From assembly GCA_025594325.1 (NCBI GenBank), contig JANHCV010000013.1:1313397-1377396 (forward strand): a stretch of DNA of 64,000 nt, read 5' to 3'. Under the pieces are notes generated by a model. The model saw nothing but the letters and a program-made list of their open reading frames with translations. It searched no databases and was not told the origin of the DNA. Shown here one piece after another: positions 3,986 to 45,580 of this stretch. The stretch comes from Blastocladiella emersonii ATCC 22665 (Eukaryota > Fungi > Blastocladiomycota). The stretch's first letter is position 1, and every line of letters starts with the position of its first letter. Made by a program: the position numbers and the translations under genes.

Positions 3986-5560
3986 GACCGCGGAGAGGAT
4001 GTAGTTGTTGATCCAGTTGCTCGCGGTCGCGATCCCGACGCCCTTGCCGCGCACACGGGCCGGGAAGATTTCGGAAACGTATGACCAGACCACGGGGCCC
4101 CACGTCGAGGCGACTATTTTTTTGCGGGGAAAAGAAAGGAGGTGGGTGAGTGGCGAGGCGGTTGGAGAGGCGAGCGAGGTGGAGGGAGCGAGCGCGAGAA
4201 AATGTCAGTCGATCGGTGTCAGAGCGGGTCCGCGGTCAATGTAAGTGAACACGTACAGCAGAGGACGTAAAGATACATCCCAACGAGGCCGATGAGCGAG
4301 TAGGCGGTCGCCGAGGCCGGGTACGCGTCGGGCGTCAGGCCCGCGGACGCCGACTGGAACAGGTTGACCGCGATGCAGATGATCCACATGAAGGTCGCCA
4401 TGCCGATACCACCCCACTTGAGCAGCTGCGTGCGGCCCGCGCGCTCGATGAGGTACATGCCGGGGAGCGTGCCGAACACATTTACGAGTGCTTGGACAAC
4501 GACATTAACGGTCGTAGCGGTATTGCGCGAGAAACCCATTGCGATGAAGAGCGAAGAGCTGAAGTACATGACCGCATTGATCCCGGTCCACTGCTGGAAG
4601 AACTGGAGCATAACGCCAATGACGAGACGGTTGCGGATGCCCGGGCGCATGAGCTCGCCCCACGACGCGGTGCCGATCTGGCGCTCGGCGTCGATCGACT
4701 GCTTGATGTCGTGGAACTCCTGCTGCACCTCGGCGGCCTTGACGTCAGTCTGGCGCAGCTTGGCGAGCTGGGCGGCAGCCTCGTCGTCGCGGTTCTTGGA
4801 CAGGAGCCAGCGGGGCGACTCGGGCAGGAGGAACAGGATGAGGATGAGCAGGAAGCCGGGCGCGGCCTGGATGCCAAGAGCGAGGCGCCACTGCGAGTTG
4901 TCGTCCTTGGCAGCCGACTTGTACACCGTGATGATGATGGCGTTGACGATCGAGGCGAAGGCGATGCCGATGGTGATCATGAGCTGCTGGATGGTCGTGA
5001 GGCGGCCGCGGATGCTGGTCGGGGCGAGCTCGGCAATGTACAGGGGCACGGTCATGGACAGGATACCGACGCCAAGACCACCGACAAAACGACCAGCCAT
5101 GACAAAACCGACGCGCGACGAGATCGAGTCGGAGGCGGGGACCAGGGCCTGGATCATGGCGCCGGCCGAGAAGAACATGGCGCCGAGCCAGATCGACTTC
5201 TTGCGGCCGAGAATGTCGGCGGCGAGGGCCATGAACAGCGCGCCGGGGATGCAGCCGAGCAGGAAGAAGGACACGATGTTGGAGGTGCGGGACGTCGACT
5301 CGTCCGTCTTGACCAGCTCGCCGTTGACGAGGTTCGAGAGGCCGTAGAACAGCTGGAACGGGTCCATCTCGAGGACCGAGTTGATGATCCCGATCTCATA
5401 GCCGAACAGGAAGCCGCCAAGGGCCGCCGCAAAACTATACGCGTGTTGAGGGACAGGGCGGCGGCGGCGGGTCAGTCGAGATGTTTCGGCGGCTTCGTGG
5501 GTGATGGGGGTGTGGGGGAACGTACCTGACAAAGACCGAGTACAGGCCCGCGTTCGTCAT
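3806..5560 (-). CDS. Sugar-porter (MFS hexose transporter family), 3 exons
   Basis: ATG at 5560 (MTNAGLYSVFVS), with GT-AG introns 5435-5525 and 4114-4256. Motifs: GGFLFGYEIG, GRKK, PLYIAELAP..RGRL, PESPRWL, QQWTGIN, WGPVVW..SEIFP..RG, PETKG. Confidence 0.95.
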
Positions 5561-11099: not shown

Positions 11100-13297
11100 C
11101 GCGCGCGACGCCGGCGTGGCTCGTGAGCAGGGATCGAGCTCACGCACCCTCGCACGCGCGGGCGGCGAATGCAACGACGCGAGAACGTTCGAGAGGCCCA
11201 GCGTCGGGTTCGGTGAAGGCCTAGTACATAAACTGCGCGGCCGCGAAAGCACGCTCGCTCAGGGCGGCCACGTTCGGGGGCGGCCCACACCGAGCCGAGC
11301 GAGAATCTCGGAGATCGTCGGTGCGCCCAGCCGCTGCTGCAGCGGGCGCGCCGCGCGAGGAAGAAACGAGGGCCAGAAGCCGCGGACACATAAAGTACAA
11401 GCCGAGAGAGGTAGCTGTAGCGAGAGACGACGGGCCTGCTGCTAGTCCGCGACGGGGGCGGCGACAGCAGATGGCGCGCGCGCCGCTCGAGCTCCGACCG
11501 TCGTTCCAACTTTGGGGGAAGAAGAGGGCGTGTGCGAGCAGGAGCAGCAGCTCGGCACCAGCTCGGCAGCGACGACTCGACTCGACTCGAGGTGCGCCGA
11601 GTTGGGGAGGGCAGGGCGAGCTGATTCGAAGCAGGGTCCGCAGCGTCGAGGGACGGGCGGTGGTCAAGGGCGATGGCGCGCAAACGACACTCGAAGCGGT
11701 GCACGACCGTGAGCGGAAACGTTGGTCGGCGCGACTGACGGAGGCAGCAGGTCAGGTCGGGACGCGGTGGGGCAGAGCAGGGCGACGCGCGCGTTGGGTT
11801 ACACACGGAGGGAGGAGTGGCGACGATTGGGGGCGACGGCGCGGACGTGCGCGTGCGAAGGCCGTCGAGCTCGCGGGCGAGGGCAAACGCGCTGGTTGGC
11901 ACGTAGAGCGTGGAGTGGTGGTGGTGGCGGCGGCGGGCAAGCGCGGCGCATGCGACAGCACCCGCTCGGCCACATGCATACGGAACGAGGAGAGGACCAC
12001 CAGCTGTGCTGCCGTTTGACGCCGACAGAAGGAGGTTGCTTGCTGCAGCGCTCAAGCGCGAGAGCGATGCCATGGGGCGAGCAGCCCGCGGAGCACGCTG
12101 CGGGCGAGGTTCATGCGATTCCATCAAGTTACAGTGCCACGTCGTGCCTTGCCTTGTTGACGTGCACATGGACATGGAGGTGAGCGGGGTGCCTGACCGA
12201 CCGAGGCCGCGCCACGCCACACGGTGGCCATGGCCGTGGCCGCCGCGCTGCGCGTCCTTGTCAGCTGACGGCGACTGACGCGTCGCGGGGCGCGCTTCGG
12301 GAGGGAGAGGTGAGGAGGCCCGAGCCTTCCTCTTCTTCTCTCTCTTCGCCGACTGACGCCCCATGCACCATGACCATGAAAGCCGATGCAACGTGATAAC
12401 TTGGTGCAACATCACGCCGGACAGGCCCTGACGCGGATCGGCGCCGTCGTGAGGTGCCCAGCCGCATCTGCTGTACCGCTACTACTGTATGACTGAGCTG
12501 AGCGTCAGTCGGACTGCTTCGTCAGCTATGCAGATGCAGCTCGTCCGTCCCCGTCGTCCTTGTCGGGAACGCCGCCTTCCGCTTGCCGTGCCCTACGTTA
12601 GTCGCGCGCGAACGTTTGCTTCAGCGGCGGGCCCCGCTAGCCAGCGTCCCTCGCTCGCTCGCCTCGTTCCGGTCCCCCTGTCGCCCCACGCCGCCGATCT
12701 GCACTGCCGAACCTCACCCGACCACCGTGACCGCTTCGTCGTCCTCGCCAGCCACCTGCTCGTCCCCCGCTGGCATGCATTCCCGAGCCGCACGACCTCC
12801 GTTCGAGCCGACCTACATGGACGTGCTCACAGCCTCGGCAACTTCATGGCGGGCCAGGTGAGTCGTCGCCACACGCGCACGCACGAGCGGGGCCAGCGTT
12901 TGGTGTGCGCGCGAGGTGCGCGCGAGGTACGCCGCCGCGAGCGGCTACCGCGGCTCGGTGCGCTTCGGGGTCCGCTGCTGCTCGTCGGCCGCAATCGCCG
13001 CCTTTCGCACCTGCTGCTTTATGACCTCGCGCTTTCGTAGCCTAGCCCAGCTGGCGGGCGGCCTGCTGCTTCGCGAGAGCATGGATGCTGCCGCCTCGCT
13101 CAACTGGCGGCCACGGCGGCGGGAACCCCTTGGATCGTCGCCCTTGACGTGCGCGTGCACCCGCCGTACCGCGTTGATTCACGCTTTCGCCGCGCGGCCC
13201 GAGCGAGGCCTTAGGATGCGTCCGTTGCTCAGCGTGTACACACGCGCGAGGTGAGCGTGCGTGCGTGCCGACGGCGAGCCGAATTCGCGCGCGGTCT
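11100..13297 (-). repeat. ~2.1 kb dispersed module, copy 1
   Basis: The core matches 52300-54338 directly (offset 41038-41041) and 27044-29081 inverted. 11100-11250 is a diverged homolog of ~29240-29400. Confidence 0.9.
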
Positions 13298-16200
13298 ACT
13301 ACCCTCCCCGCCACCCCTGCCGACACTCTGACGAGACCGAGTGAGCGGAGGCACGCACGCGTGGTGATGATGATGTGCGGCGCCTTTGTTACGACGCTCG
13401 GGCCAGAAAGGCGCCTGTCTGGACTTGCGCGCGCTCGCGCGCGTGGCGGCCACGATGGCGCGGCGGGGGACGCTGGCCGCCGCCCGGCCCAGCCAGCCCG
13501 CCGCCCGCCGCCCGCCGCCCGCCGACTTAGACACATGAATTCCCCCAAAAACAATAATTCTTGTTTATCACTGAATCGTGATCAGGGACCATCAGGGACC
13601 CCAGAAATGCAAAAATCCCCGAGTCAAAGCATGGGGGTGTTGAGATCGTGTTCGGGCGCGCCGAGGCGAAAAAGTTTTTCACTCGCGGCCGTCGCGACGA
13701 GCTCGCGGCGCGGGTGGGCAATTCAAGCACGTAACGCTCAATCTGGCAGCTCCCGACCTGTCTCGGATCTGGCTCAAACTTTGCACGTAATCTTCTGATA
13801 TATCATGAGATATTTTAGACTAGTGAGCATAATTTTACGGCGTCGTTTGACGGCCCTGCATGCATCGGGGGTGGTTAGTTCACGTATTCGAGCTCCACCT
13901 CGCTCGCTCACTGGGTTGGCCACCGGGCCGGGCGACACTCTGCTCCCACTGCTCGGGCCCGCGACCGCGTCCACTGGCTTCGCTCGCCATCCTTTGCCCA
14001 CGATCACGATCACGATCGCCGCTAATCAGCATCATGACCGCCGGCCGGGTCGACGACCAAGGCAAAGCGCGGCAACATGGCCGCCGGGTCGACGACCAAG
14101 GCGAAGAAGCAGCAAGCAACATGGCCGACCGCCGGGTCCTGGACCTGCGTGTGGTCGACGCGGCGGCGACGCGCGAGACACGGGCGCTGTAGTGGCGGCG
14201 GTGGCCGTTCCAAGGCGCGCGCGCGCGAGGAGGTGTGTGCGCCGCCTCGTACGCGGGAGGAACGAGCGGCGGGTTGCCCGACGTTCATGAGCTCGCCGTC
14301 CGCGAGCTAAGCTAACCCGTTGCGTCCGTTTGATGTTCCCGTCCGGCGCGCGCCCAACCTGTCGTCGTCCAACCTGTCGTCGCCCGCGATCGCGCCCCGC
14401 GACGGCGCGCGCGCAAGTTCGGAAGTTCGGCATGCCGACCGCCGCCGAGCTGGTTGACGAGAACGAAGATCCCCACCCGACTCGTGTCCTGCGGTCGGCC
14501 GACCTCACGCGCATCGCCACGCATCGCCAAGAAGCGGGGCGGCGGCCCGCGGCAAAGGAACCGTTGGCGCTGTTTGGCGTCGACCTGCTGTCGCGCGAGG
14601 ACATGAGCTCCGAGGAGGACGGCGATGTGGCCGGCACGAAGCATCGCGGCTTGGGCGCCACCAAGTACGCGAGATTCGCGCCGAGCCGCGCCGCGCGGAA
14701 AAGGGTTGCCGATGCTGGCACGCGTCCAAGAGGGACCTGGCCCGACGCGACGACGGCAGCATAAAGTAGAAGCGGGGCCGGCTGCCGGGATGAGCCGCGG
14801 CACGCAGCGGCGCTCGAGGACGGCGACGCTCTCGCCGGGTAGCGGGGAGCATGTTTGGACGCAGCAAGGTTGAGTGAGCGTGGACGGCGACGGGTTGAAG
14901 GCGCGCACCTGAGCGCGAGAGCGAAAGCGCTGCTTCAGCCAGACGGCAAAGCAGTAGCAAGCGGTCGAGGAACACGGTGGCTCGCGAGCGACCGAGCCAA
15001 GCGTGCTGCTGCTGGCGCTGCTTCGGGTGGCAACGACCCAAGGGGCGGCGGCGGCGGCTTACAACGGGTGTGCAGCTGGCGTGTGCCAGCACACGCGGGG
15101 CAGCGGCAGCGGGCAGAGTGTCGCGTGCGCGCGGGATGGCCATGCCACCGACCGCAGCCGCTCCAGCACAACGGCCGCAGCGAGGGAGCGAGCGAGCGCG
15201 GACATCACCACCACGGCTCACGCTGCAGTCTGACACCGTAGGAGAGAAAGTGCAGGGTGCGGTCGGCGAGGGGGCGATGCGCGCGGGGACACGATGGCGA
15301 GTCGTTTGAGCGGTGGCGCGCTCGCCGGCGGCAACAAGCGTCTAGGGTCATGCATGGGTCATGGGCGCATGGTACCGCCGCGGCGTGTGCGACGTGTTGA
15401 TGTGGTATACATGGATGCGTTTCATGGAGTGGTGAGGTAATATAGCGGGTCATGATCAGGCGAGAGAGCGAGGACCGCGCGCGGCGACGAGGCGCCCTTT
15501 ATACTCCTCCGCCCGTGCCCCGCTGCCTGCCACGCGGCGGCCACCGCCACCGACAAGGACTCTGGCGCTCTGACGCGAGCAGCGAGCAGCGAGCAGCGAG
15601 CAGGTCGCTGGCTCGCGGCGGTCGCCCACAGACTTTCGACGTGCCGCTCATGCGAGGTCGCGTCGCTCACCATCCGCTGCCCTTGACATCTCGTGCGCAG
15701 CTCGGGTTGCACACGACGAAGTCTCTAGCTCTCGCGACCATCAACTTCTCAAGCACGACACCAGGACGACTACAACCTCGCTACATTCATCCCCACATCA
15801 AACGATCGTCTACAGATCTACTCGGACTTCTTCTCGGCGGCCTCCTTGAGGACCTTGTCGAGGTCGTCCTTGGCGAGCCACTTGCCCTCGACCTCCTTGA
15901 TCTTCTTCTCGAGCTCCTCGACGCGCTTGGTGAGGGCGGCCACCTCGGGCACCTTGTTCCCAGTACTGCCGCGGGCGCGGGTGATGGTGCGCTTGAGCGC
16001 GGGCTTGTCCTGCTCGGCGGCTAGCACGAGGGCCGCGTCGGCGGCGCCCGCGAACTGGGCGGGCAGGCCGTAGGGCAGGTTGGCGATGGCGGCCGTGGCC
16101 GACGCGCGCACGCGGAAGTGCGGGTCGTACAGGACCTCGGCGATCGCCTCGCCAATGGTGCGCGCGAGCGGCTCGGGGACCCACGCGGCGGCCGACGCGA

Positions 16201-18411
16201 GCGCCTGCACGAGGTTGGCCTTGACCGAGAACGGGAAGTCGGCGCCCATGACCGCGGCGTGCTGCGCGAGCAGGAACTCGGCCGCCTCGACGGTGCGGAA
16301 CGCGGCCACGTCGTGGTACGACATGGCGCGCACCGAGTCCTTGTAGTCGGTAAACTCGGGGGTCGTGCCGGCGGCGTAGGCGGCGACGAGCGCGAAATCC
16401 TCGGGGCGGCGCTGCGCCGCGATCGCCGTGATGAGCGCCGAGCGCTGCACGTACGTCAGGTCGGCCTTGGGGTCGGCGAGCGTCGCGTGCGCAAACTTGG
16501 CGATGGCCGGGTGCTTGAAGTTGAGGCGGTTGAAGATGAGCTTGCGCGCGACATCGTCCGTCTCCTGCGCCGCCAGATCGACGAGCAGGTCGACGGCGGG
16601 CGCGTGGCGCAGACCGGCGAGCGCCATGGCGATCTTGGCGCGGACCATGGGCATCTTCTCGGCGAGCGCGATCGGGCGCACCTTGCGCAGCGTGTAAAAG
16701 TCGGCGTCCTTGAGCAGCGTGCGGTACGCGCGGACGCGGTTGACGCAGTCGCGCGCACCCGCGGCCGTGGCGAGCAGCACGTCGTGGCCCGGGTTGAACT
16801 CGCCTTCGAAGGCGAACAGCTGGAAGCCGTCGGGGTCGACCTCGACGCGCACGGGCTTGCCGCCGGGACCCGCAGCAGTGCCGGTGTGGGCGGCAGCAAC
16901 GGCCTTGGCCGAGTTGCCGTCAAACGACGCGACCGCGCGGTGCACGGCGCCGTCGGCCGTGGCAAACTCGACGGGCACGTCCATGGCGAACAGCGGGACG
17001 CCCTTGGCGGCGTCGGCCTGGGTCTGCTCGAGCGTGACGTGCGCGACGCCCTTGGCCTCGTCGTAGGCGTACTCGGCCTTGAACTTGGGGAAGCCCTTGG
17101 AGTAGAACCACTGGTCGAAGAAGCGCGTCAGGTTGAGGCCCGAGAACTCCTCGAGCACCTTGCGGAAGTCGTCGGTCTCGACCGTCTTGCCCGTGAACCG
17201 GCGCACGTACTCGCCGACGGCGGGCCAGAACACGTCGTCGCCGAGCAGGCCGCGCAGCATGTGGATGCGCGCGCCGCCGCCCGGGTACAGGTGGCCGTCG
17301 AACATGTTCCACGAGTGGTCGTACTGGCGGCAAACGACGGGGCGGAGATAGCGCTGGGTCTCGCGGATGTAGGCCTCCTGGTCGTCGAAGCGGTACATGC
17401 GGGCACGCTGGCGCATCTCCTCGGGCGTGGCGCCGACGTGCTCCTCGACCCAGACCGACTCGATGTAGGTGGCCCACGACTCCTTGAGCCAGGCGTGCTC
17501 GAAGAAGCGGACGACGGTCTAGCGAGCGGTTCGGGTGGGCGTGCGTAAGTCGGCGGCGGTTCCAGGTGTGTTCTGGGAGAAGCGAGAGCGTACCATGTCG
17601 CCCTGGATGTCGAGAATGATGATGGGTACAAGTGGGGAAGCGAGGGGGCGCGGGTTAGTGGTCGGCGACGCGCGACGCGGTCCACTCGAGCGAGACGCGT
17701 ACGAAGAGCGAGTGGGCCATCTCGTGGATGTTGATCGTGTCCATGACAAACTTGTTGTCGCGCTCGTGGGTCTTGTCCATGGCGAGGAAGCTGCCCCAGC
17801 TACAAGGGACAACGAGGTGACGAGGGTGAGTGACCAGTCGGTCGCGGCACGACGCTCCGCCCAACGATTCCGAGGACCCGCCCAACGATTCCAGGGCCCC
17901 ATATAGGTCAGGAGAACAGGAAAACACGTACGAAACAGAAGAAATGTTCTCCATGGCCCCACCAATGAATGGAGACATGACTTGGTGATACTTTGGCCAC
18001 GGGATGGGCGTAATTTTGGCGCACAACCACGAGTACATGGCCGGCGTCGAGTCCAGGCCGCGCTTGACGTCCTCAATGGCAAAGTTCTTGGGCGCATAGT
18101 ACTTGATGGGCACCTCGCCGAGCGCGGTCACGGCCGGGCGGTCGTCGATGGTCTTGAAGTCGCCCACGGCGAGGAACAGCAGGTACGACGGGCACGGGAA
18201 GTCCAGGTCCCACACGGTCGTCTTGAGCGAGGCGTCCTCGGCGTTGGGGGTCGACGAGACAAGGGCGCCGTTGGCGACCGTCTCGAAGTCGGCGGGCGCC
18301 GTCAGGCGGAACGTCAGGCGCGGGCGCACCGTCGGGAAGTCGACGCACGGCAGCCAGTAGCGCGCGCGCTCCGTCTCGTGGTCCGTGATCGCGTACGTGC
18401 CGTTCGACGGC
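11260..18411 (+). repeat. Left arm of 7.15 kb inverted duplication 2
   Basis: Position x pairs with 40341-x throughout (all mirrored ORF pairs sum to 40341). One substitution seen (15137 vs 25204). Confidence 0.97.
15498..15503 (-). promoter_or_regulatory. TATA-like box (mirror copy at 24838-24843, + strand)
   Basis: TATAAAGGG in GC-rich context, about 45 nt upstream of an ATG (24888 in the right-arm copy). The downstream ORFs look degenerate. Confidence 0.3.
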
Positions 18412-18878
18412 GTGTCGACCGAGTTGAAGAAGAGGCCCGACACGGGCTTCTCGACGCGGTACGTGACGGTGATCTTGCGCTCGTCGCCCTTGGCGGCGAA
18501 GGGCTCGGCCCAGCGCAGCGTGATCTCATTGCCGTCGTACTCGAAGCCGGCGAGCTTGTCGCCCGTGACGGCGACGTTGTCGAAGCCGACGGCGTGCAGG
18601 GTCAGGCGCGTCGCGGCGTCGCCGAGGGCGGCGGCCGTCGGGACGGCGGCGTTGCAGCGGACCGTGTGGGTGACGGTGCCGTCGACGGCGTTGTTGGGGA
18701 AGTCGAAGACGAGGCCGATGTCCATGTGAACAGGCTCCAGCGTGATGTTGGGCGCATAGTGCTTGACGGCGTCGGCGGCGGCGAAGCCGGCGAGGTCGTT
18801 GTGCGGCTCGGCACCGGCGGCTTCGCCGAAGAGCTCGGCAGCGGCGCGGACGTGCGCGCAGGACGAGGAGCAGGGCAT
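15818..18878 (-). CDS. M1 family zinc aminopeptidase with C-terminal HEAT-like region and coiled coil
   Basis: Contains GGAMEN. HEMAH-x18-E is restored by splicing through a 9-nt exon (17594-17602). Also WLKES and YPGGGARIHMLR (catalytic Tyr region). ATG at 18878, three introns, C-terminal coiled coil VAALTKRVEELEKKIKEVE. Confidence 0.93.
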
Positions 18879-19919
18879 GGTTTGGTTGCGTAGCAAAGAG
18901 TGCGGGCGGGGAGCGAGGACGGCGTGCGGCGGGCGCGCTCGCTATTTGTAGGGCGGGCGGGTTGGGGAGGATCGGGAGGGGTCCGGCAGGAATCCGACGT
19001 CAGCGCGTCACAAGAGGCACAACAAGGGCGGGTCGGGGGAGGAGACGTGCCGCGAAAAGGGCCGAGGAGAACCCGCGCGCCTGCGGCACCGTCACCTGAT
19101 CAAATCGCCACACGGCCGGCCCGCCGTGCAGCGTGCGCGAGGCCCCCGTAGCTGGCGTCGTCGACGCGGAAGTTGACGCACTCGGCGGCCACCAGATCGA
19201 CATGGCGGCAGCGGTGCGGGCTGGCGCGATCAGGGACCCGTGTGCCGCGAGCGCGCTGGCGCGGCGGGCGAGGTGACGGGTGAGCGACAGCATCGGCCTA
19301 ATTCAGTCTAGGCTGCGAGGGAGAGCAGCACGGTGGCCCTGCGTTGCACTAAGTTACGTGGCAATCGTCCTTCTCGATGGGACGCCGATCGCGGCAGCGG
19401 GGGTGGCTCAGCATCGGCGAGCGCGCGCCCGCCGTGGCAACGCGGTCAGCTGACACCGTGTGAGCGGCGCAGCGCGTCCTTCCGCCCCGCTTCGCGTTAC
19501 CCGTTACATTGCGCCCGCGCGCTCCTAGACCTCGATGCAACCCATACATTCCGCTATGCGACGTCATGCACTGACTAGCGCGAGCACTCTTTGGGCACTT
19601 GCCGCTTGCCGCTCCAGGATCCCGCCCATGGTTGAGCAACGGGACGACGACGCGCCTTCCGATTCGACTTTGACTAGCTGTTCGCGTCGCGGCCGCGACG
19701 TGCCCCATGAACACATCGCACTTACCAATCACCATTTCATTGCAGAATCCACGAGAGATCAACATGCTGAGAGGAGGAACGCGACCACTCGACTGTGCTG
19801 TTAGTCGGACAAGTTTAAGCCATGCTCGCGAGCAAAGTCATAAATGAGAGACACCCCTGGAACGTAGCTATGGCAGCTCAGGAGATCTTCATGGACTAGA
19901 AATAGCGGATAAGCAGCTG

Positions 19920-21299
19920 TTAGCAGCCGTTCGCGCGAGTGCAGATTATCAGAGAAGTGCTTGTACCTTCTCGGAACAGAGGTGTGATCCGCTCACGGCC
20001 AAGCAATGTGAGCAACTCATCAAGATTGGCGCGGCCCTCGTCAAAGCTGGAGTTGAGCACGTCGTAGATGACGAGGACGTAGTCTGAATCCTTCAAATAC
20101 CCAGTTGGACGAAACTCTTTGAGGACGGTAAGGCCTGCTCCGCTGGAATGCAAAAACAGGACGGGCGCTTCGCTCGCAGAAGAATTGGGGAATTTGGAAA
20201 GGTGGTCCGCCACGTCGTGGGGGCGATCGAAGCACTCGTAAATCGCAAGACAAGCTTTAGCTGACCGGGTAGCGGCAGACTTGCACGCTTTTCCATAGGT
20301 ATATGTGCGTGGGTCGTCCGGGTTCCAGCCGTGCGCGACGAGGTAGTTGTACATTTGCAGGACGCCGGCGGCAGTCATCGGCACTGAATCAAGAAACGGA
20401 TGCCGGTCATTGCTGCGCTGCACGTTTGACTCGAGTACCTGCTGCACAAGCCGGCGGCCGTCCATACCGAACCGAGACGCCGAAAAGAGTGAAAACGCGG
20501 TTTCGTGGAAGCTTTGGACTGCATACGCCGCGCAGAATTCAATGATGGTCGGCGGTAGTGCCGTATTTTTGTAGGTGTGGAGGTCGACCAATTGGCGGGA
20601 CGACTTGCCGTACAGCGAAGAGATCCCTCTCCAAACGTTGAGGTCGACCGGAATGGAAAGCAGCCCAGGGGCGGAGATGCGCATCGAATCAAGGAGATGC
20701 TCGAGCATGACCATGTCGTTAATGTCTGCAAGGAAAAGGCACAACAAGGCTACTGTGAGCACTGGCGACCGCGAGGCAGCGCGTTTGGCATAATGATCGT
20801 CAGGGCGCTGCAAAAATTCGAGGAGCTTACCAAGATGAGCAGAGAGGACGAGTGTGGATGGAGCGCGTGGAAGTGCGGCAGCGGATTGTTGCACGAGGTG
20901 AGAAACGAACAAGTGAGAGACCACGTTCGAGCTGTTGGATTGTGCGTCAATGAAGAGGAGGTTGCAGATGTAGTCGAGATCGGAAAAAATCGACCAGTCG
21001 CTCCAACTTGCGGTTGAGGCGCCCAGCCCCAAAAAACTGGGCGACAGGTCCCAGTCATCGTCGTTCGAATGGTCGGAATCGAGGTCGTCCTCCTCCGAAC
21101 CATGGAACTTACGAGCGCGCGTTGAGATCGCGCGAAATCCCCAGTTCAGAGTTACCGAGGAGTCGCGCGAGGCCTCGCTGAGTGCCCGGGACGCGACGGG
21201 GACCGTGGAGCGCAGCGCGGCGAGCTGCAGGATCATGGTGCCTGGGACCGAGTGGAAAATTGCATCAAGATTCATTTGCATGTAGTCATTGGCTTCCAT
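19920..21299 (-). CDS. Intronless low-GC orphan protein (459 aa), possible degenerate N-terminal F-box
   Basis: Uninterrupted 1380-nt ORF in lower-GC DNA, where such length is unlikely by chance. N-terminus IFHSVPGTMILQLAAL..VPVASRAL resembles an F-box pattern. Confidence 0.7.
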   Translation of the reverse strand: MEANDYMQMNLDAIFHSVPGTMILQLAALRSTVPVASRALSEASRDSSVTLNWGFRAISTRARKFHGSEEDDLDSDHSNDDDWDLSPSFLGLGASTASWSDWSIFSDLDYICNLLFIDAQSNSSNVVSHLFVSHLVQQSAAALPRAPSTLVLSAHLGKLLEFLQRPDDHYAKRAASRSPVLTVALLCLFLADINDMVMLEHLLDSMRISAPGLLSIPVDLNVWRGISSLYGKSSRQLVDLHTYKNTALPPTIIEFCAAYAVQSFHETAFSLFSASRFGMDGRRLVQQVLESNVQRSNDRHPFLDSVPMTAAGVLQMYNYLVAHGWNPDDPRTYTYGKACKSAATRSAKACLAIYECFDRPHDVADHLSKFPNSSASEAPVLFLHSSGAGLTVLKEFRPTGYLKDSDYVLVIYDVLNSSFDEGRANLDELLTLLGRERITPLFREGTSTSLIICTRANGC

Positions 21300-21870
21300 T
21301 GCTGGGTGCTAGTGGTTGTCGAGGGAGCGCAAACCGTGAGAGCCGCCAGACGAGCTCAAGAACGCGAAGCAAAGGCGACGCGTTCCGATTGCCTTGACAG
21401 GGCTCTCGCGCCGCGGTCATCAACCTTTGATCAACGAAGCCAGGCTCGTCGGTCGCGTCGTTCATCCCGTCGTCAGGCTAGGGATCAAGTACCAGTGCGA
21501 CCTCGGCCACTGCGCACCTGCTGATGACCAACAAGTCCCTTTCTCGTCGCTATATCGAGAAATGAAGGAAGCACACTGGCTGAGTGATATCGTGTTGCGC
21601 TCGCGACCTGGCTCATGAACACGATTGTAAGTGGGTCGTGGTCGAGACCGGATACCGGTGAGGTGAGCGCGCAACAGGCGCGTCGCGGTTGGCTGCGAGA
21701 CATCGCGTGAGTGGCTGAGGCGCGCAGCCCCACCGAAACAGTTCCCTTGCGAGAAATCGCGCAGGGACGACTCGCACCTCCGCTTGACGACAAACTGGCA
21801 ACCATGGAACACCGGATTATTGGATGTAACATCGTGCAACGCTCAGCGGCGAAACGTATCATCAGGCTCC

Positions 21871-24523
21871 ATGAACGCGTCGCTTGACAGAAGTTCGCGG
21901 AGCCAAAGTGCCTTCAACTCGTCGGACCTGCCGTCGAACGGCACGTACGCGATCACGGACCACGAGACGGAGCGCGCGCGCTACTGGCTGCCGTGCGTCG
22001 ACTTCCCGACGGTGCGCCCGCGCCTGACGTTCCGCCTGACGGCGCCCGCCGACTTCGAGACGGTCGCCAACGGCGCCCTTGTCTCGTCGACCCCCAACGC
22101 CGAGGACGCCTCGCTCAAGACGACCGTGTGGGACCTGGACTTCCCGTGCCCGTCGTACCTGCTGTTCCTCGCCGTGGGCGACTTCAAGACCATCGACGAC
22201 CGCCCGGCCGTGACCGCGCTCGGCGAGGTGCCCATCAAGTACTATGCGCCCAAGAACTTTGCCATTGAGGACGTCAAGCGCGGCCTGGACTCGACGCCGG
22301 CCATGTACTCGTGGTTGTGCGCCAAAATTACGCCCATCCCGTGGCCAAAGTATCACCAAGTCATGTCTCCATTCATTGGTGGGGCCATGGAGAACATTTC
22401 TTCTGTTTCGTACGTGTTTTCCTGTTCTCCTGACCTATATGGGGCCCTGGAATCGTTGGGCGGGTCCTCGGAATCGTTGGGCGGAGCGTCGTGCCGCGAC
22501 CGACTGGTCACTCACCCTCGTCACCTCGTTGTCCCTTGTAGCTGGGGCAGCTTCCTCGCCATGGACAAGACCCACGAGCGCGACAACAAGTTTGTCATGG
22601 ACACGATCAACATCCACGAGATGGCCCACTCGCTCTTCGTACGCGTCTCGCTCGAGTGGACCGCGTCGCGCGTCGCCGACCACTAACCCGCGCCCCCTCG
22701 CTTCCCCACTTGTACCCATCATCATTCTCGACATCCAGGGCGACATGGTACGCTCTCGCTTCTCCCAGAACACACCTGGAACCGCCGCCGACTTACGCAC
22801 GCCCACCCGAACCGCTCGCTAGACCGTCGTCCGCTTCTTCGAGCACGCCTGGCTCAAGGAGTCGTGGGCCACCTACATCGAGTCGGTCTGGGTCGAGGAG
22901 CACGTCGGCGCCACGCCCGAGGAGATGCGCCAGCGTGCCCGCATGTACCGCTTCGACGACCAGGAGGCCTACATCCGCGAGACCCAGCGCTATCTCCGCC
23001 CCGTCGTTTGCCGCCAGTACGACCACTCGTGGAACATGTTCGACGGCCACCTGTACCCGGGCGGCGGCGCGCGCATCCACATGCTGCGCGGCCTGCTCGG
23101 CGACGACGTGTTCTGGCCCGCCGTCGGCGAGTACGTGCGCCGGTTCACGGGCAAGACGGTCGAGACCGACGACTTCCGCAAGGTGCTCGAGGAGTTCTCG
23201 GGCCTCAACCTGACGCGCTTCTTCGACCAGTGGTTCTACTCCAAGGGCTTCCCCAAGTTCAAGGCCGAGTACGCCTACGACGAGGCCAAGGGCGTCGCGC
23301 ACGTCACGCTCGAGCAGACCCAGGCCGACGCCGCCAAGGGCGTCCCGCTGTTCGCCATGGACGTGCCCGTCGAGTTTGCCACGGCCGACGGCGCCGTGCA
23401 CCGCGCGGTCGCGTCGTTTGACGGCAACTCGGCCAAGGCCGTTGCTGCCGCCCACACCGGCACTGCTGCGGGTCCCGGCGGCAAGCCCGTGCGCGTCGAG
23501 GTCGACCCCGACGGCTTCCAGCTGTTCGCCTTCGAAGGCGAGTTCAACCCGGGCCACGACGTGCTGCTCGCCACGGCCGCGGGTGCGCGCGACTGCGTCA
23601 ACCGCGTCCGCGCGTACCGCACGCTGCTCAAGGACGCCGACTTTTACACGCTGCGCAAGGTGCGCCCGATCGCGCTCGCCGAGAAGATGCCCATGGTCCG
23701 CGCCAAGATCGCCATGGCGCTCGCCGGTCTGCGCCACGCGCCCGCCGTCGACCTGCTCGTCGATCTGGCGGCGCAGGAGACGGACGATGTCGCGCGCAAG
23801 CTCATCTTCAACCGCCTCAACTTCAAGCACCCGGCCATCGCCAAGTTTGCGCACGCGACGCTCGCCGACCCCAAGGCCGACCTGACGTACGTGCAGCGCT
23901 CGGCGCTCATCACGGCGATCGCGGCGCAGCGCCGCCCCGAGGATTTCGCGCTCGTCGCCGCCTACGCCGCCGGCACGACCCCCGAGTTTACCGACTACAA
24001 GGACTCGGTGCGCGCCATGTCGTACCACGACGTGGCCGCGTTCCGCACCGTCGAGGCGGCCGAGTTCCTGCTCGCGCAGCACGCCGCGGTCATGGGCGCC
24101 GACTTCCCGTTCTCGGTCAAGGCCAACCTCGTGCAGGCGCTCGCGTCGGCCGCCGCGTGGGTCCCCGAGCCGCTCGCGCGCACCATTGGCGAGGCGATCG
24201 CCGAGGTCCTGTACGACCCGCACTTCCGCGTGCGCGCGTCGGCCACGGCCGCCATCGCCAACCTGCCCTACGGCCTGCCCGCCCAGTTCGCGGGCGCCGC
24301 CGACGCGGCCCTCGTGCTAGCCGCCGAGCAGGACAAGCCCGCGCTCAAGCGCACCATCACCCGCGCCCGCGGCAGTACTGGGAACAAGGTGCCCGAGGTG
24401 GCCGCCCTCACCAAGCGCGTCGAGGAGCTCGAGAAGAAGATCAAGGAGGTCGAGGGCAAGTGGCTCGCCAAGGACGACCTCGACAAGGTCCTCAAGGAGG
24501 CCGCCGAGAAGAAGTCCGAGTAG
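21871..24523 (+). CDS. 5'-truncated, chimeric duplicate of the M1 aminopeptidase
   Basis: From 21930 it mirrors the parent gene. The upstream frame is open with ATG 21871 (MNASLDRSSRSQSAFNSSDL then PSNGTYAITDHE). It lacks about 156 N-terminal residues but keeps GAMEN, HEXXH-E and the C-terminus. Expression unknown. Confidence 0.7.
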
Positions 24524-27500
24524 ATCTGTAGACGATCGTTTGATGTGGGGATGAATGTAGCGAGGTTGTAGTCGTCCTGGTGTCGTGCTTGAGAAGTTGA
24601 TGGTCGCGAGAGCTAGAGACTTCGTCGTGTGCAACCCGAGCTGCGCACGAGATGTCAAGGGCAGCGGATGGTGAGCGACGCGACCTCGCATGAGCGGCAC
24701 GTCGAAAGTCTGTGGGCGACCGCCGCGAGCCAGCGACCTGCTCGCTGCTCGCTGCTCGCTGCTCGCGTCAGAGCGCCAGAGTCCTTGTCGGTGGCGGTGG
24801 CCGCCGCGTGGCAGGCAGCGGGGCACGGGCGGAGGAGTATAAAGGGCGCCTCGTCGCCGCGCGCGGTCCTCGCTCTCTCGCCTGATCATGACCCGCTATA
24901 TTACCTCACCACTCCATGAAACGCATCCATGTATACCACATCAACACGTCGCACACGCCGCGGCGGTACCATGCGCCCATGACCCATGCATGACCCTAGA
25001 CGCTTGTTGCCGCCGGCGAGCGCGCCACCGCTCAAACGACTCGCCATCGTGTCCCCGCGCGCATCGCCCCCTCGCCGACCGCACCCTGCACTTTCTCTCC
25101 TACGGTGTCAGACTGCAGCGTGAGCCGTGGTGGTGATGTCCGCGCTCGCTCGCTCCCTCGCTGCGGCCGTTGTGCTGGAGCGGCTGCGGTCGGTGGCATG
25201 GCCGTCCCGCGCGCACGCGACACTCTGCCCGCTGCCGCTGCCCCGCGTGTGCTGGCACACGCCAGCTGCACACCCGTTGTAAGCCGCCGCCGCCGCCCCT
25301 TGGGTCGTTGCCACCCGAAGCAGCGCCAGCAGCAGCACGCTTGGCTCGGTCGCTCGCGAGCCACCGTGTTCCTCGACCGCTTGCTACTGCTTTGCCGTCT
25401 GGCTGAAGCAGCGCTTTCGCTCTCGCGCTCAGGTGCGCGCCTTCAACCCGTCGCCGTCCACGCTCACTCAACCTTGCTGCGTCCAAACATGCTCCCCGCT
25501 ACCCGGCGAGAGCGTCGCCGTCCTCGAGCGCCGCTGCGTGCCGCGGCTCATCCCGGCAGCCGGCCCCGCTTCTACTTTATGCTGCCGTCGTCGCGTCGGG
25601 CCAGGTCCCTCTTGGACGCGTGCCAGCATCGGCAACCCTTTTCCGCGCGGCGCGGCTCGGCGCGAATCTCGCGTACTTGGTGGCGCCCAAGCCGCGATGC
25701 TTCGTGCCGGCCACATCGCCGTCCTCCTCGGAGCTCATGTCCTCGCGCGACAGCAGGTCGACGCCAAACAGCGCCAACGGTTCCTTTGCCGCGGGCCGCC
25801 GCCCCGCTTCTTGGCGATGCGTGGCGATGCGCGTGAGGTCGGCCGACCGCAGGACACGAGTCGGGTGGGGATCTTCGTTCTCGTCAACCAGCTCGGCGGC
25901 GGTCGGCATGCCGAACTTCCGAACTTGCGCGCGCGCCGTCGCGGGGCGCGATCGCGGGCGACGACAGGTTGGACGACGACAGGTTGGGCGCGCGCCGGAC
26001 GGGAACATCAAACGGACGCAACGGGTTAGCTTAGCTCGCGGACGGCGAGCTCATGAACGTCGGGCAACCCGCCGCTCGTTCCTCCCGCGTACGAGGCGGC
26101 GCACACACCTCCTCGCGCGCGCGCGCCTTGGAACGGCCACCGCCGCCACTACAGCGCCCGTGTCTCGCGCGTCGCCGCCGCGTCGACCACACGCAGGTCC
26201 AGGACCCGGCGGTCGGCCATGTTGCTTGCTGCTTCTTCGCCTTGGTCGTCGACCCGGCGGCCATGTTGCCGCGCTTTGCCTTGGTCGTCGACCCGGCCGG
26301 CGGTCATGATGCTGATTAGCGGCGATCGTGATCGTGATCGTGGGCAAAGGATGGCGAGCGAAGCCAGTGGACGCGGTCGCGGGCCCGAGCAGTGGGAGCA
26401 GAGTGTCGCCCGGCCCGGTGGCCAACCCAGTGAGCGAGCGAGGTGGAGCTCGAATACGTGAACTAACCACCCCCGATGCATGCAGGGCCGTCAAACGACG
26501 CCGTAAAATTATGCTCACTAGTCTAAAATATCTCATGATATATCAGAAGATTACGTGCAAAGTTTGAGCCAGATCCGAGACAGGTCGGGAGCTGCCAGAT
26601 TGAGCGTTACGTGCTTGAATTGCCCACCCGCGCCGCGAGCTCGTCGCGACGGCCGCGAGTGAAAAACTTTTTCGCCTCGGCGCGCCCGAACACGATCTCA
26701 ACACCCCCATGCTTTGACTCGGGGATTTTTGCATTTCTGGGGTCCCTGATGGTCCCTGATCACGATTCAGTGATAAACAAGAATTATTGTTTTTGGGGGA
26801 ATTCATGTGTCTAAGTCGGCGGGCGGCGGGCGGCGGGCGGCGGGCTGGCTGGGCCGGGCGGCGGCCAGCGTCCCCCGCCGCGCCATCGTGGCCGCCACGC
26901 GCGCGAGCGCGCGCAAGTCCAGACAGGCGCCTTTCTGGCCCGAGCGTCGTAACAAAGGCGCCGCACATCATCATCACCACGCGTGCGTGCCTCCGCTCAC
27001 TCGGTCTCGTCAGAGTGTCGGCAGGGGTGGCGGGGAGGGTAGTAGACCGCGCGCGAATTCGGCTCGCCGTCGGCACGCACGCACGCTCACCTCGCGCGTG
27101 TGTACACGCTGAGCAACGGACGCATCCTAAGGCCTCGCTCGGGCCGCGCGGCGAAAGCGTGAATCAACGCGGTACGGCGGGTGCACGCGCACGTCAAGGG
27201 CGACGATCCAAGGGGTTCCCGCCGCCGTGGCCGCCAGTTGAGCGAGGCGGCAGCATCCATGCTCTCGCGAAGCAGCAGGCCGCCCGCCAGCTGGGCTAGG
27301 CTACGAAAGCGCGAGGTCATAAAGCAGCAGGTGCGAAAGGCGGCGATTGCGGCCGACGAGCAGCAGCGGACCCCGAAGCGCACCGAGCCGCGGTAGCCGC
27401 TCGCGGCGGCGTACCTCGCGCGCACCTCGCGCGCACACCAAACGCTGGCCCCGCTCGTGCGTGCGCGTGTGGCGACGACTCACCTGGCCCGCCATGAAGT

Positions 27501-29081
27501 TGCCGAGGCTGTGAGCACGTCCATGTAGGTCGGCTCGAACGGAGGTCGTGCGGCTCGGGAATGCATGCCAGCGGGGGACGAGCAGGTGGCTGGCGAGGAC
27601 GACGAAGCGGTCACGGTGGTCGGGTGAGGTTCGGCAGTGCAGATCGGCGGCGTGGGGCGACAGGGGGACCGGAACGAGGCGAGCGAGCGAGGGACGCTGG
27701 CTAGCGGGGCCCGCCGCTGAAGCAAACGTTCGCGCGCGACTAACGTAGGGCACGGCAAGCGGAAGGCGGCGTTCCCGACAAGGACGACGGGGACGGACGA
27801 GCTGCATCTGCATAGCTGACGAAGCAGTCCGACTGACGCTCAGCTCAGTCATACAGTAGTAGCGGTACAGCAGATGCGGCTGGGCACCTCACGACGGCGC
27901 CGATCCGCGTCAGGGCCTGTCCGGCGTGATGTTGCACCAAGTTATCACGTTGCATCGGCTTTCATGGTCATGGTGCATGGGGCGTCAGTCGGCGAAGAGA
28001 GAGAAGAAGAGGAAGGCTCGGGCCTCCTCACCTCTCCCTCCCGAAGCGCGCCCCGCGACGCGTCAGTCGCCGTCAGCTGACAAGGACGCGCAGCGCGGCG
28101 GCCACGGCCATGGCCACCGTGTGGCGTGGCGCGGCCTCGGTCGGTCAGGCACCCCGCTCACCTCCATGTCCATGTGCACGTCAACAAGGCAAGGCACGAC
28201 GTGGCACTGTAACTTGATGGAATCGCATGAACCTCGCCCGCAGCGTGCTCCGCGGGCTGCTCGCCCCATGGCATCGCTCTCGCGCTTGAGCGCTGCAGCA
28301 AGCAACCTCCTTCTGTCGGCGTCAAACGGCAGCACAGCTGGTGGTCCTCTCCTCGTTCCGTATGCATGTGGCCGAGCGGGTGCTGTCGCATGCGCCGCGC
28401 TTGCCCGCCGCCGCCACCACCACCACTCCACGCTCTACGTGCCAACCAGCGCGTTTGCCCTCGCCCGCGAGCTCGACGGCCTTCGCACGCGCACGTCCGC
28501 GCCGTCGCCCCCAATCGTCGCCACTCCTCCCTCCGTGTGTAACCCAACGCGCGCGTCGCCCTGCTCTGCCCCACCGCGTCCCGACCTGACCTGCTGCCTC
28601 CGTCAGTCGCGCCGACCAACGTTTCCGCTCACGGTCGTGCACCGCTTCGAGTGTCGTTTGCGCGCCATCGCCCTTGACCACCGCCCGTCCCTCGACGCTG
28701 CGGACCCTGCTTCGAATCAGCTCGCCCTGCCCTCCCCAACTCGGCGCACCTCGAGTCGAGTCGAGTCGTCGCTGCCGAGCTGGTGCCGAGCTGCTGCTCC
28801 TGCTCGCACACGCCCTCTTCTTCCCCCAAAGTTGGAACGACGGTCGGAGCTCGAGCGGCGCGCGCGCCATCTGCTGTCGCCGCCCCCGTCGCGGACTAGC
28901 AGCAGGCCCGTCGTCTCTCGCTACAGCTACCTCTCTCGGCTTGTACTTTATGTGTCCGCGGCTTCTGGCCCTCGTTTCTTCCTCGCGCGGCGCGCCCGCT
29001 GCAGCAGCGGCTGGGCGCACCGACGATCTCCGAGATTCTCGCTCGGCTCGGTGTGGGCCGCCCCCGAACGTGGCCGCCCTG
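21930..29081 (-). repeat. Right arm of inverted duplication 2
   Basis: Reverse complement of 11260-18411. Confidence 0.97.
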
Positions 29082-29400
29082 GGCGAGCGAGCGAGCGCGG
29101 CGCAGCGCAGCTGTGGGATCAACGTCGGTATGTCCGTGGACGCAGCCGGCCGGCCAGCTGAGCAACGAACGTCTCGGCCGTCACGCTGGCTGGTAAGCGT
29201 ACGGGGCGGCGAAACGCCATCGAAACGGCCGCGCCGGGCGTGCGTGCTGCTGTGCCGCGCCCGCAGCCTTACGATGCCTTTCGATGCCTTCGCCCGAACC
29301 TGACGCTTGGCCGCTCAAACGTTTCCGCGTCGTTGCATTCGCCGCTTGCGCGCGAGGGTGTGTGTGTTCGATCTCAGCTCGCGAGCCACGCCGGCGTCGA
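27044..29400 (+). repeat. ~2.1 kb dispersed module, copy 2 (inverted)
   Basis: Core matches copies 1 and 3. 29082-29250 is shared in diverged form with copy 3 (52130-52300) but absent from copy 1. Confidence 0.9.
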
Positions 29401-30635
29401 GCTTGTATTGTAGCTACGACGCTTTCTTATCATAGTATTCACATCTCGTGCGACCAGGCGAGCGGCACTGTCCATGCGATCTGGTACTTGGTACCTTACG
29501 ACGAGCTCGCGCCCGCAACCTGGGTTTCGCTGTATGCGGCTCCTGCACTCCTTTCCCGCGACGCGTATCCCTTCGCGATGCCTGTGCGCATCAGTTAACG
29601 CGTCCGACTTCTCGGACTGGGCGCGAAAAACGACGACGCTGCTGTGGGTCCGTTTGCGACCATGACACGTGTACCGCTCGCCGATATGCGAGCCGGGTTT
29701 GTCCCGCATCGACGCCCCTTGACACCCTCATCGCCTGTGTAGCTTCTTGTGAACCAGCCTTTGGGGATCCCGCCACTTGGCCACAGTTCTGCAGCTTCGC
29801 TGTCGCCCTGAACGTTGACCTGCTCGCGTTAGTATCGGCTGCGCTTGCCGGCCATGTGTCTGATCTTCTCATCGAGTATTTGAGCAGCCCTCAGTCGCCT
29901 GTCGACCCTTACTTGGTCTGTGTGATCGTTCTGGTGCGAGTGTTCGCAGGGCTCCTTCAGCCAATTATGGAGCACAAGTTCATGTGGCTCCTTCTTTCGC
30001 ACTCGTGGGACGATGTTGGTTTTGGGCGCGCGCTCGACTTCTTTGACCAAGAATGTTCTCGCCTTTCAGCAGATGACCCCAATCTCGACCCGCAGATCCT
30101 GGCGGGTTACTTCATAGGCGCAGCCGCCAACGAACGCGCCCTGACTTTGACGCAGCAAGCTCAGCCATTCAATGCGGGCCGACTCGCCGACCTACTCGCG
30201 GCGCTCGTTGAGCGGTACCCCGGCACAGCGATCTCTGGTGACCAAGCTCCAAAGATCTTGACCTGGTTAAGCCCTCTTCTTGATGGTCGATCTCTTCCGA
30301 CCCCGTCCGAGCACCAGTTTTTCACCACCTTGCTGTCTCACGATCCGGCTTATGTTGTCAGCTTTCTGATCATGGATTGGTCGAGCGAGCTACCGCACTG
30401 GATCTGGGAGGCTGTCGCCGACCACGAGTTTGCCCGCGCTGTGCTTTTCGAGAACCTCAACTATCGCATGGGCTCGATCCGGGACACGCTTCGCTTGCTC
30501 GTGCATCGCAATGACCTAGCGCGGGCGCGGGCGGTCCTTCGCGCGGTTCCTCAGCTGCTTGATGACATGGATCTTTGCGAGTCGATTTCTCACATGGAGG
30601 GCATCGATCTCGCGAGCCTTCGTCCCAATCCATGA
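29284..30635 (+). CDS. Low-GC orphan gene (possibly frameshifted at 5' end)
   Basis: ATG 29284 (MPSPEPDAWPLKRFRVVAFAA, 104 aa) overlaps a 395-codon ORF (29448-30635) of helical, protein-like composition. No family recognised. Confidence 0.6.
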
Positions 30636-30727
30636 ACTCAGTGGCCTCGTTCAAAAACACGTCGTCATTTCCGTGTTTCTTCAGGGGGAAGGAGTAATAT
30701 ATTTGATTTGAGCGACCTAGGAGAGTG

Positions 30728-31957
30728 TCACGATTGAGAACCAAGACCCGACTCGCGCCACCATCGAGCAACCTGGCCGAATCCGAGCTTCAGTGCGAGC
30801 TCCTGAGCATGACAGACATGGTCACGCCCAAGTGCGAGTGGGACCTCCGAGTTGAGCCACCACTGGAGCCGCGCGACAACGTCCGTTTCGTCGTCGGTGG
30901 CCTCGATCGTAAACCAGCCAAACGGGCACACGAACTCGTCGCGCGGGAGAGTCACAAGCAACCAGTCGAGGACCTGGATGCGGTTGAGCTTGCTCGCGTA
31001 GCCGATCATGAATGACCAATATGGCCTCGAGTCCGTAGCTTCACGATCGCAGTTGTTGCCCTCGTCGACTGCGCTCTCGACCAAGTCGACGCCGTACGCC
31101 TCGGGCTCCCACGCAGGGTTGCTATGGCGGCGGAGGCACTCGTCGTCGCAGCGCCGGTAGATCCACGCCAACAAATCAAAGTCGGCGGGCTCCGAGCAGA
31201 TCACGGCGCGGACCAACGCGGTCCAGTCGATGGCTCCCATAAAAAAGGCGCCCGAGCGAGGCGAGCTTCGGAAGCATTCGAAAACCTGGACGCTCGGGCG
31301 CCGGAGGGCAAGCAACGTCAAGTCGTACAGATCCAACTCGGCGTAATCAAGATGAAGCTCGAGCAGGTACGGAAGAAGCTCGATATCCTGCTGCTCGACG
31401 GCGTTGTGGAGGACTGCAGCGGAGACCTTGATCACGGGAGTCGTTTTCCACCACTCGAGGACGCGGTAGTGGCGGTCGCGCGCCGCTCTGTCGACCGCGG
31501 CCTTGGTGCACCAGGACCCAGAAAAGTGCTCTTCAAGCCAGTGCAGGACGTCGGCGTGGCCACGGGCCGACGCCAGGTCCACGTAAAGCGGCGTGGTCAC
31601 GCTTATCTCGATCAAGGTGCTCAAGTCGCCCAGCAAGTCGGCGCGACCGGCCGCGCAAAGCAGGGCGCCGTAGAAAGTGGCCTGATCGACGTCCGCCTTG
31701 GGCAACGGCCGGCGGTGCTCAATGAGCTGAGCCAAGACATGGTTCCCGCCGTGCAAGAGAAGTGTCCACATGCGTTCGTGAACCGAGCGAGCAAAGACAG
31801 TGCTGCGTAGGTCGGAAAGATCGGGGGCGACGCAAAGTAGCGGCAGTGGGTCGGCACCGCAAGGATCGTCCAGCACGACGCGGATGAGGATCTGCTCGAT
31901 GAGTTTGATCTTTGGGAGTTGCATGGTGTGCTTCGGGCGCTGCATGGGAACCGGCAT
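30728..31957 (-). CDS. Ankyrin-repeat-like orphan protein (409 aa) with F-box-like N-terminus
   Basis: Repeated degenerate ankyrin-like units (VDLASARGHADVLHWL, VDRAARDRHYRVLEWW, IGYASKLNRIQVLDWL). N-terminus LPKIKLIEQIL...LLCVAP. Intronless, lower GC. Confidence 0.75.
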   Translation of the reverse strand: MPVPMQRPKHTMQLPKIKLIEQILIRVVLDDPCGADPLPLLCVAPDLSDLRSTVFARSVHERMWTLLLHGGNHVLAQLIEHRRPLPKADVDQATFYGALLCAAGRADLLGDLSTLIEISVTTPLYVDLASARGHADVLHWLEEHFSGSWCTKAAVDRAARDRHYRVLEWWKTTPVIKVSAAVLHNAVEQQDIELLPYLLELHLDYAELDLYDLTLLALRRPSVQVFECFRSSPRSGAFFMGAIDWTALVRAVICSEPADFDLLAWIYRRCDDECLRRHSNPAWEPEAYGVDLVESAVDEGNNCDREATDSRPYWSFMIGYASKLNRIQVLDWLLVTLPRDEFVCPFGWFTIEATDDETDVVARLQWWLNSEVPLALGRDHVCHAQELALKLGFGQVARWWRESGLGSQS

Positions 31958-45484: not shown

Positions 45485-45580
45485 GCTGCAATAGAGAACA
45501 CACCGTTGTTTGGAATTGAGAGAGAATGGGTACAAAACTGGTTAGGGGACGCGACCACGCGCGCGCGAGCAGTTGATCGA

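Follow-up and report, generated by a model that had tools for sequence, protein, structure and literature searches.

A 64,000-nucleotide stretch of the Blastocladiella emersonii ATCC 22665 genome (contig JANHCV010000013.1, positions 1,313,397 to 1,377,396 of the forward strand; this whole stretch is called the window, and its own numbering is used throughout) contains a palindrome with two copies of an M1-family aminopeptidase gene. The two arms, 11260–18411 and 21930–29081, are reverse complements of each other over 7,152 bp, apart from a single mismatch, and contain no indels. A repeat search, a base-by-base comparison and a blastn self-alignment agree on this result. An earlier note on this DNA had described such arms, without net indel, around a spacer of 3.5 kb, and this description is accurate (Table 1). 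The same note explained the arms by an event in which a one-ended invasion between inverted repeats copied about 5 kb past the homology and was closed at a new microhomology junction. Below, we describe the two ends of the identical tract, which bear on this explanation.

Codon-position G+C gives one clear coding region per arm, the M1 gene. Its identity is based on Pfam matches (Peptidase_M1_N, Peptidase_M1 and HEAT_2), on PDB matches to aminopeptidase N and its relatives and on the GAMEN and HEMAH motifs in the translation. The M1 peptidase pieces of the window are 100% identical to NCBI proteins of B. emersonii ATCC 22665. In the left gene only the first ∼155 codons lie outside the arm, in the spacer. 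The right copy lacks the promoter, the start and these ∼155 codons, and a tblastn search found no trace of the missing N-terminal 155 codons elsewhere in the window. The public model of the right copy consists of 14 unrelated codons from an in-frame ATG at 21871, followed by M1 sequence from 21912. KAI9156060.1 is a 5′-truncated duplicate of KAI9156059.1 and not an independent gene. About 83% of the M1 gene is thus present twice and the gene is complete only on the left, in agreement with the suggestion in the earlier note that most of a host gene was duplicated. Both public models splice out the segment that encodes the GAMEN motif (17650–18100 on the left and 22240–22690 on the right). This segment is in frame in the DNA and is retained in the model of a paralog that is introduced below, and the intron has probably been mis-called in both models.

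The outer ∼4.3 kb of each arm (11260 to ∼15600 on the left) is filled by a dispersed repeat. The summed contig depth over 24730–27329 corresponds to about 4–13 copy equivalents of this repeat in the genome, and many of the contigs are 95–99% identical. Contigs that depart from this sequence at 24739/24746 show where the repeat ends on one side, at a (CTGCTCG)4 run. Since read depth shows these ∼4.3 kb to be dispersed repeat, the arm contains no more than ∼2.8 kb of unique DNA, instead of ∼5 kb. No codon periodicity and no Pfam match (13 open reading frames, ORFs) were found in the repeat part of the arm, and the repeat has no detectable long terminal repeat (LTR) or terminal inverted repeat (TIR). 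Any transcript of the repeat would be non-coding, because coding periodicity is lacking. A TATAAAGG motif is located at 24838–24846 (mirror ∼15496–15504), ∼100 bp inside the repeat and just past the 3′ end of the M1 gene.

Table 1. Features of the palindrome and of the related copy C, in window coordinates.
Feature	Position	Strand	Length	Description
Left arm	11260–18411		7,152 bp	Identical to right arm, 1 mismatch, no indel
Right arm	21930–29081		7,152 bp	Left arm inverted; single-copy part at 2.1–2.2× spacer depth
Spacer	18412–21929		3,518 bp	5′ part of the M1 gene and the DNA upstream of it; lower-GC sequence carrying an orphan ORF
Sole arm difference	15137 = T; partner 25204 = C on the same strand			CpG transition
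Complete M1 gene	15821–18878	−		M1-family zinc aminopeptidase with HEAT-repeat tail; public model KAI9156059.1, 883 aa
5′-truncated M1 copy	21871–24523	+		Predicted public model KAI9156060.1, 747 aa
Right inner edge, apparently unconverted	21912–21929	+	18 nt	Older M1 coding sequence, FNSSDL
Left partner of inner edge	18412–18429	−		Intact left gene, FNSVDT; 15/18 to paralog, three private changes
Outer diverged homology, left	11103–11259			Without ∼165 bp present in right copy and copy C
Outer diverged homology, right	29082–29402			29286–29402 is 84% identical to left 11103–11220
Non-coding dispersed-repeat part, left	11103–15600			Right mirror about 24740–29402
Orphan ORF	19923–21299	−		459 aa, lower-GC part of spacer
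Copy C of outer module	52148–54338	+		Direct to left arm; mosaic edges

The presence of the palindrome in the reads was judged from Logan contigs (k = 31 graph) of public DNA runs of the same strain. All of these runs derive from the assembly's own sample, so that the same DNA preparation underlies both the assembly and its support. The published assembly, in 21 contigs, was obtained from PacBio high-fidelity (HiFi) reads (mean 10.5 kb) using the La Jolla Assembler, with polishing by 65-bp Illumina reads (PMC9730499). The junction region is present in three DNA runs of this one sample. In two of them, here called X1 and X2, a contig of 3.2–3.3 kb crosses the junction 21929/21930 and matches 21330–21959 with 0 differences. 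It reaches 30 nt into the arm, which is the maximum that can be reached because a 31-mer graph must branch where the arm is shared. One Logan contig spans 18658–21959 at single-copy depth (34.3 for the spacer in X1 and 132.1 in X2). It has no branch at 21929, which means that the graph retained no other path out of the spacer.

The depth of the arms agrees with two copies. In X2, six arm contigs within 21984–24794, the single-copy M1 part, have depths of 278–289, which is 2.11–2.19 times that of the spacer; the half depth per arm that would have indicated a misassembly was not seen. In X1 the arm contigs reach a depth of up to 77, with a ratio of 2.2 at a G+C content of ∼0.62–0.65 that drops to 0.9 at 0.71. 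This drop looks like the G+C bias of that library. X1 is probably the Illumina library of the genome paper, because 34.3 matches the 31-mer expectation for 2.2 Gb of 65-bp reads on 34.3 Mb. For the sole arm difference, position 25204 lies inside the multi-copy repeat, where contigs derive from other copies. The junction contig and the 2.1–2.2-fold depth show that the palindrome exists in the DNA itself and is fixed in this sample.

At both ends, the identical tract is nested in older and more diverged homology. At the outer end, in-register identity falls to 15/20 at 11240–11259. Past an indel of ∼165 bp, left 11103–11220 and right 29402–29286 are 84% identical over 119 bp. The outer end is therefore located inside older diverged inverted homology, and on this point the earlier note was correct. 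A third copy of the outer module, copy C, is found in the window in direct orientation to the left arm. The right flank 29082–29238 is 77% identical to copy C. Over its first ∼41 nt, next to the arm, copy C and the right copy are identical, and the left copy cannot be aligned there. Over the next 57 nt copy C shows about 80% identity at positions where both arms agree with each other. Its near-identical core follows, with one mismatch in 1,920 bp compared with both arms. Copy C is a mosaic, which requires several separate copying events between repeat copies within a 43-kb stretch. At the far end of copy C a 13-bp micro-inversion is present (13244–13256 in the left arm versus 54282–54294 in copy C, GCGCGAGGTGAGC versus its reverse complement). 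It coincides exactly with the point where the near-identical core ends, distinguishes copy C from either arm and resembles the footprint of a template switch.

The inner end is best described with the help of an outgroup. A protein search identified an M1 paralog, H9P43_002914 (920 aa, 80% identical), on another contig (JANHCV010000003.1, 200985–224016). In blastn comparisons of this locus with the window, the whole gene aligns with the left copy at 83–85%, while the alignment with the right copy starts exactly at 21912; tblastn agrees. The paralogous gene is not flanked by the dispersed repeat, and the homology of its locus to the window does not extend past either end of the gene. In the 45 nt upstream of 21912 the right copy is unrelated to both the left copy and the paralog (11–12/45), which match each other at 44/45 positions. 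No residual homology was found inward of 21912.

Between this point and the arm lie 18 nt (21912–21929) that align in register with the intact left gene. Proceeding inward from the arm, an 8-nt block with 3/8 matches is followed by ten matches (CTTCAACTCG), after which identity drops to chance level. In-register runs of at least ten within 30 nt occur in 0.013% of random pairs from the window. The in-register homeology and the letters that the earlier note quoted for this junction are correct, but a new microhomology junction is not what the paralog suggests. The last 8 nt of the stretch read GTCGACAC on the left, TCGGACCT on the right and GCCGACCT in the paralog. Over all 18 nt the right copy matches the paralog at 16/18 positions, the left copy matches the paralog at 15/18 and the two copies match each other at 13/18. 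The left copy has three private changes and the right copy has two, and there is no site at which left and right agree against the paralog. At least six chance matches in 8 nt would be expected with p of about 0.007 at this base composition. The encoded peptides are FNSSDL (right), FNSADL (paralog) and FNSVDT (left), and the ortholog from B. britannica also has Asp-Leu at this position, like the right copy and the paralog. No source for the 8-nt patch is found within the window.

The right edge has an origin of its own. As it is nearer to the paralog and shares no site with the left copy against the paralog, 21912–21929 is old M1 coding sequence for which the present left arm did not serve as template. 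Had it been copied from there and mutated afterwards, three of the five changes would have to coincide by chance with the letters of the paralog. On this comparison, the true breakpoint of the duplication is 21911/21912, and a truncated M1 copy was in place before the arms acquired their identity.

We consider it probable that the palindrome is an older head-to-head inverted duplication, which was made identical by later non-reciprocal copying from arm to arm. The original block would have extended over about 11103–18429 on the left (29402–21912 on the right) and would have contained a non-coding dispersed repeat of ∼4.5 kb and the 3′ 83% of the M1 gene. In this original duplication the gene would have been broken at about codon 156 and the right copy placed between two stretches of lower G+C content. 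Gene conversion or intrachromosomal templated repair would then have homogenised the whole collinear block. On the outer side, homogenisation would have stopped at the indel of ∼165 bp (11259/11260 and 29081/29082), and on the inner side 18 nt before the homology ends (18411/18412 and 21929/21930), so that the edges beyond the homogenised tract would keep their older divergence. The reason for this reading is the older, diverged homology that surrounds the identical tract on both sides: gene conversion is expected to homogenise a collinear block up to heterologies and to spare short edges, and a new junction between unrelated sequences would not give this pattern. The divergence of the edges (16% at the outer end and 5/18 at the inner end) is of the order of that between the left gene and the paralog (12–15%), and the mosaic structure of copy C shows that short-range copying between repeats has occurred here more than once. 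We infer that arm-to-arm copying, in one long tract or in many shorter ones, produced the identity and is still ongoing.

Several observations weigh against this reading. The older homology at the inner end is only 18 nt long, and the outgroup argument there rests on five variable sites. At the outer end, the homology is that of a dispersed repeat family, and independent insertions could account for it in place of one old duplication. Conversion over ∼2.8 kb at a would-be divergence of ∼15% is normally disfavoured. No GC-biased excess of substitutions was found in the arm part of the gene when compared with the paralog, in a test that is weak at a G+C content of third codon positions already near 0.95: the strong-to-weak differences between the left gene and the paralog are 12:19 and 60:71 in the arm parts and 15:12 in the N-terminal part outside the arm. 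The M1 loci of B. britannica lie on contigs of 4–15 kb without a palindrome and encode proteins with 54% identity, which makes them too short and too diverged to reveal an orthologous palindrome. Finally, the comparison covers one B. emersonii sample.

One form of this general reading is that a single long-tract repair event, templated by the left arm, overwrote an older and diverged right copy. After a break in or next to the right copy, the 3′ end ...CTTCAACTCGTCGGACCT would have primed on the homeologous site of the left gene; alternatively, the invasion would have begun within the repeat, whose copies are highly similar. Some 7.15 kb would then have been copied at once and the second end captured at the other limit of homology. 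The ends of the identical tract are both sharp and only one difference is present in 7,152 bp, as such an event would leave. The right-specific 8 nt are kept beside a perfect match of 10 nt, as would be expected for a retained primer or anchor. Repeat copies that are 95–99% alike would also make a good invasion site, while the gene part would be diverged by ∼15%. On the other hand, 7 kb is unusual for a mitotic conversion tract, and filling the collinear block from edge to edge would be a coincidence, whereas repeated conversion predicts exactly that. Copy C moreover shows several separate events nearby. Taken together, we regard a single tract as somewhat unlikely.

The mechanism proposed in the earlier note is distinctly unlikely. 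It assumes a de novo inverted duplication: a one-ended invasion between inverted repeat copies led to break-induced replication (BIR) across unique DNA with most of the M1 gene, and microhomology in unrelated spacer DNA brought the process to its end, in the manner of microhomology-mediated BIR (MMBIR). The outer boundary inside inverted homology, the near identity of the arms and an in-register inner match of 10 nt that is beyond chance are all compatible with it. Nevertheless, the inner 18 nt are in-frame M1 sequence with more similarity to the paralog than to the left gene, their supposed template, and the private changes of the left copy are absent from the right copy. Letters of the template are expected directly after the shared 10 nt, yet eight non-template letters follow, for which the window offers no source. 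Recombination between inverted copies remains the right class of mechanism; the new BIR/MMBIR junction and the copying of ∼5 kb past the homology are not borne out by the paralog comparison and the read depth.

A transposon origin of the right copy, with the mobile repeat transducing 2.8 kb of flanking M1 sequence into lower-GC DNA, appears very unlikely. The right block has a G+C content of 0.674 between flanks of 0.577 and 0.595, the repeat is multi-copy and an ORF resembling a long interspersed nuclear element (LINE) lies beside copy C. However, a search of the repeat and the right block gave no target-site duplication, poly(A), LTR or TIR, and the repeat carries no coding signal or Pfam match. 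Such an origin would in any case cover the old duplication alone and not the present identity with diverged edges. An assembly artefact, be it a fold-back chimera or a repeat that was collapsed or expanded in the HiFi assembly, is extremely improbable: all three runs share the assembly's sample and short-read polishing could erase a few real differences between the arms, but 21929/21930 is found in contigs of two runs at single-copy depth without an alternative branch on the spacer side, the arms have 2.1–2.2 times the spacer depth, the unique 3.5-kb spacer is unlike those of missing-adapter fold-backs and HiFi reads with a mean of 10.5 kb are longer than the arm.

If the older duplication with later arm-to-arm copying is accepted, the locus would, by analogy, be a structure of a familiar kind that works like the palindromes of sex chromosomes and of asexual animals. 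Gene conversion between the arms keeps the human and ape Y palindromes P1–P8 identical (Rozen et al. 2003, as cited in PMC5490193; PMC8600007), and the same holds for gene-bearing palindromes of the X chromosome (PMC8327919, PMC8981503). In common with these, the B. emersonii locus has inverted arms that are more than 99.9% identical, a unique spacer and genes in the arms, and according to the diverged edges the identity would be much younger than the duplication. In contrast to them, the arms are 7 kb and not tens to hundreds of kilobases long, and they are located on a fungal chromosome that is not a sex chromosome. One of the two arm genes is 5′-truncated, and most of the arm is dispersed non-coding repeat. 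The B. emersonii locus also lacks a GC-biased signature and is known from one species.

B. emersonii is not known to have a sexual cycle. The palindromes of asexual animals are similar in being numerous, intrachromosomal and made of collinear genes, in the lack of known sex and in that arm-to-arm conversion has been proposed for them; 17 are given for Adineta vaga and 11 for Folsomia candida (PMC5490193). As described there, these are multi-gene blocks with measurable synonymous divergence (Ks of 0.2 in one F. candida case), whereas the arms in B. emersonii are virtually identical.

Two further classes of rearrangement resemble the locus in part. In duplication–triplication/inversion–duplication (DUP-TRP/INV-DUP) structures, template switching between inverted repeats is combined with a second junction at microhomology (MMBIR: PMC2621351; PMC11293582; PMC4352052). 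These likewise have one boundary inside inverted repeats, a short perfect match at the other and an inverted duplicated segment. The B. emersonii locus differs in that no segment is triplicated (the single-copy part of the arm is at 2.1–2.2 times and not three times the spacer depth) and in that the second 'microhomology' is a remnant of homologous gene sequence that has a history of its own. Inverted duplications formed by fold-back at double-strand breaks also combine an inverted duplication with a short spacer (PMC10622511, PMC3907307). Their spacers measure tens of base pairs to a few kilobases and start at a short inverted repeat, and they are usually accompanied by a terminal deletion or a dicentric chromosome (PMC10622511, PMC3907307). 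The B. emersonii structure, on the other hand, is interstitial and stable, and its 3.5-kb spacer contains genes.

The structure described in the earlier note can be regarded as settled, while its mechanism needs to be corrected: the seemingly fresh MMBIR junction would be 18 nt at the end of an old gene fragment that conversion did not reach. Comparing the few bases past the identical tract with a paralog offers an edge test that can be used on other near-identical palindromes. We tentatively suggest that B. emersonii might keep a set of gene-bearing palindromes, homogenised by intrachromosomal copying that is very efficient, to within ∼20 nt of the end of homology, in resemblance to the palindromes of Y chromosomes, bdelloids and springtails. 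At this locus the outgroup paralog would then date the duplication and reveal the process, which would act on non-coding repeats and on a dead fragment of a gene as well; this would speak for a general property of the recombination machinery and not for selection for gene dosage. If correct, such a set would be a genome-wide feature of a model zoosporic fungus that is absent from its genome paper, which makes no mention of palindromes or inverted repeats (PMC9730499).

Flipping of the spacer would change neither M1 copy, as the two arms have the same sequence. DNA of lower G+C content (0.58–0.60 compared with 0.67) at 19304–21911 and 29403–31957 encloses the right copy and carries long orphan ORFs without Pfam matches. 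For the orphan ORF of the spacer (19923–21299), a look-up returned no exact product on record. No mutual relationship between the three lower-GC orphan ORFs was detected by blastp, and comparison of the spacer and flanks with the window by tblastx gave compositional noise only. Scans of the window for tRNA genes and Rfam families gave no matches.

Other duplications are present in the window. A second inverted repeat, IR1 (1–649 and 3337–3985), is 100% identical and is clipped by the window edge. Its inner boundary is sharp, with no homeology past it. The regions 3804–5442 and 45579–47101 form an older paralogous gene pair with 71–76% nucleotide identity. Their offset of 41.65–41.78 kb is close to the 41.04 kb between the left module and copy C, and the gene pair and the module may be the remnant of an old direct segmental duplication of which the module alone is now near-identical. 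Adjoining copy C, whose homology to the module ends at 54338, lies a 1,524-codon ORF with an RNase H domain (54837–59408, minus strand).

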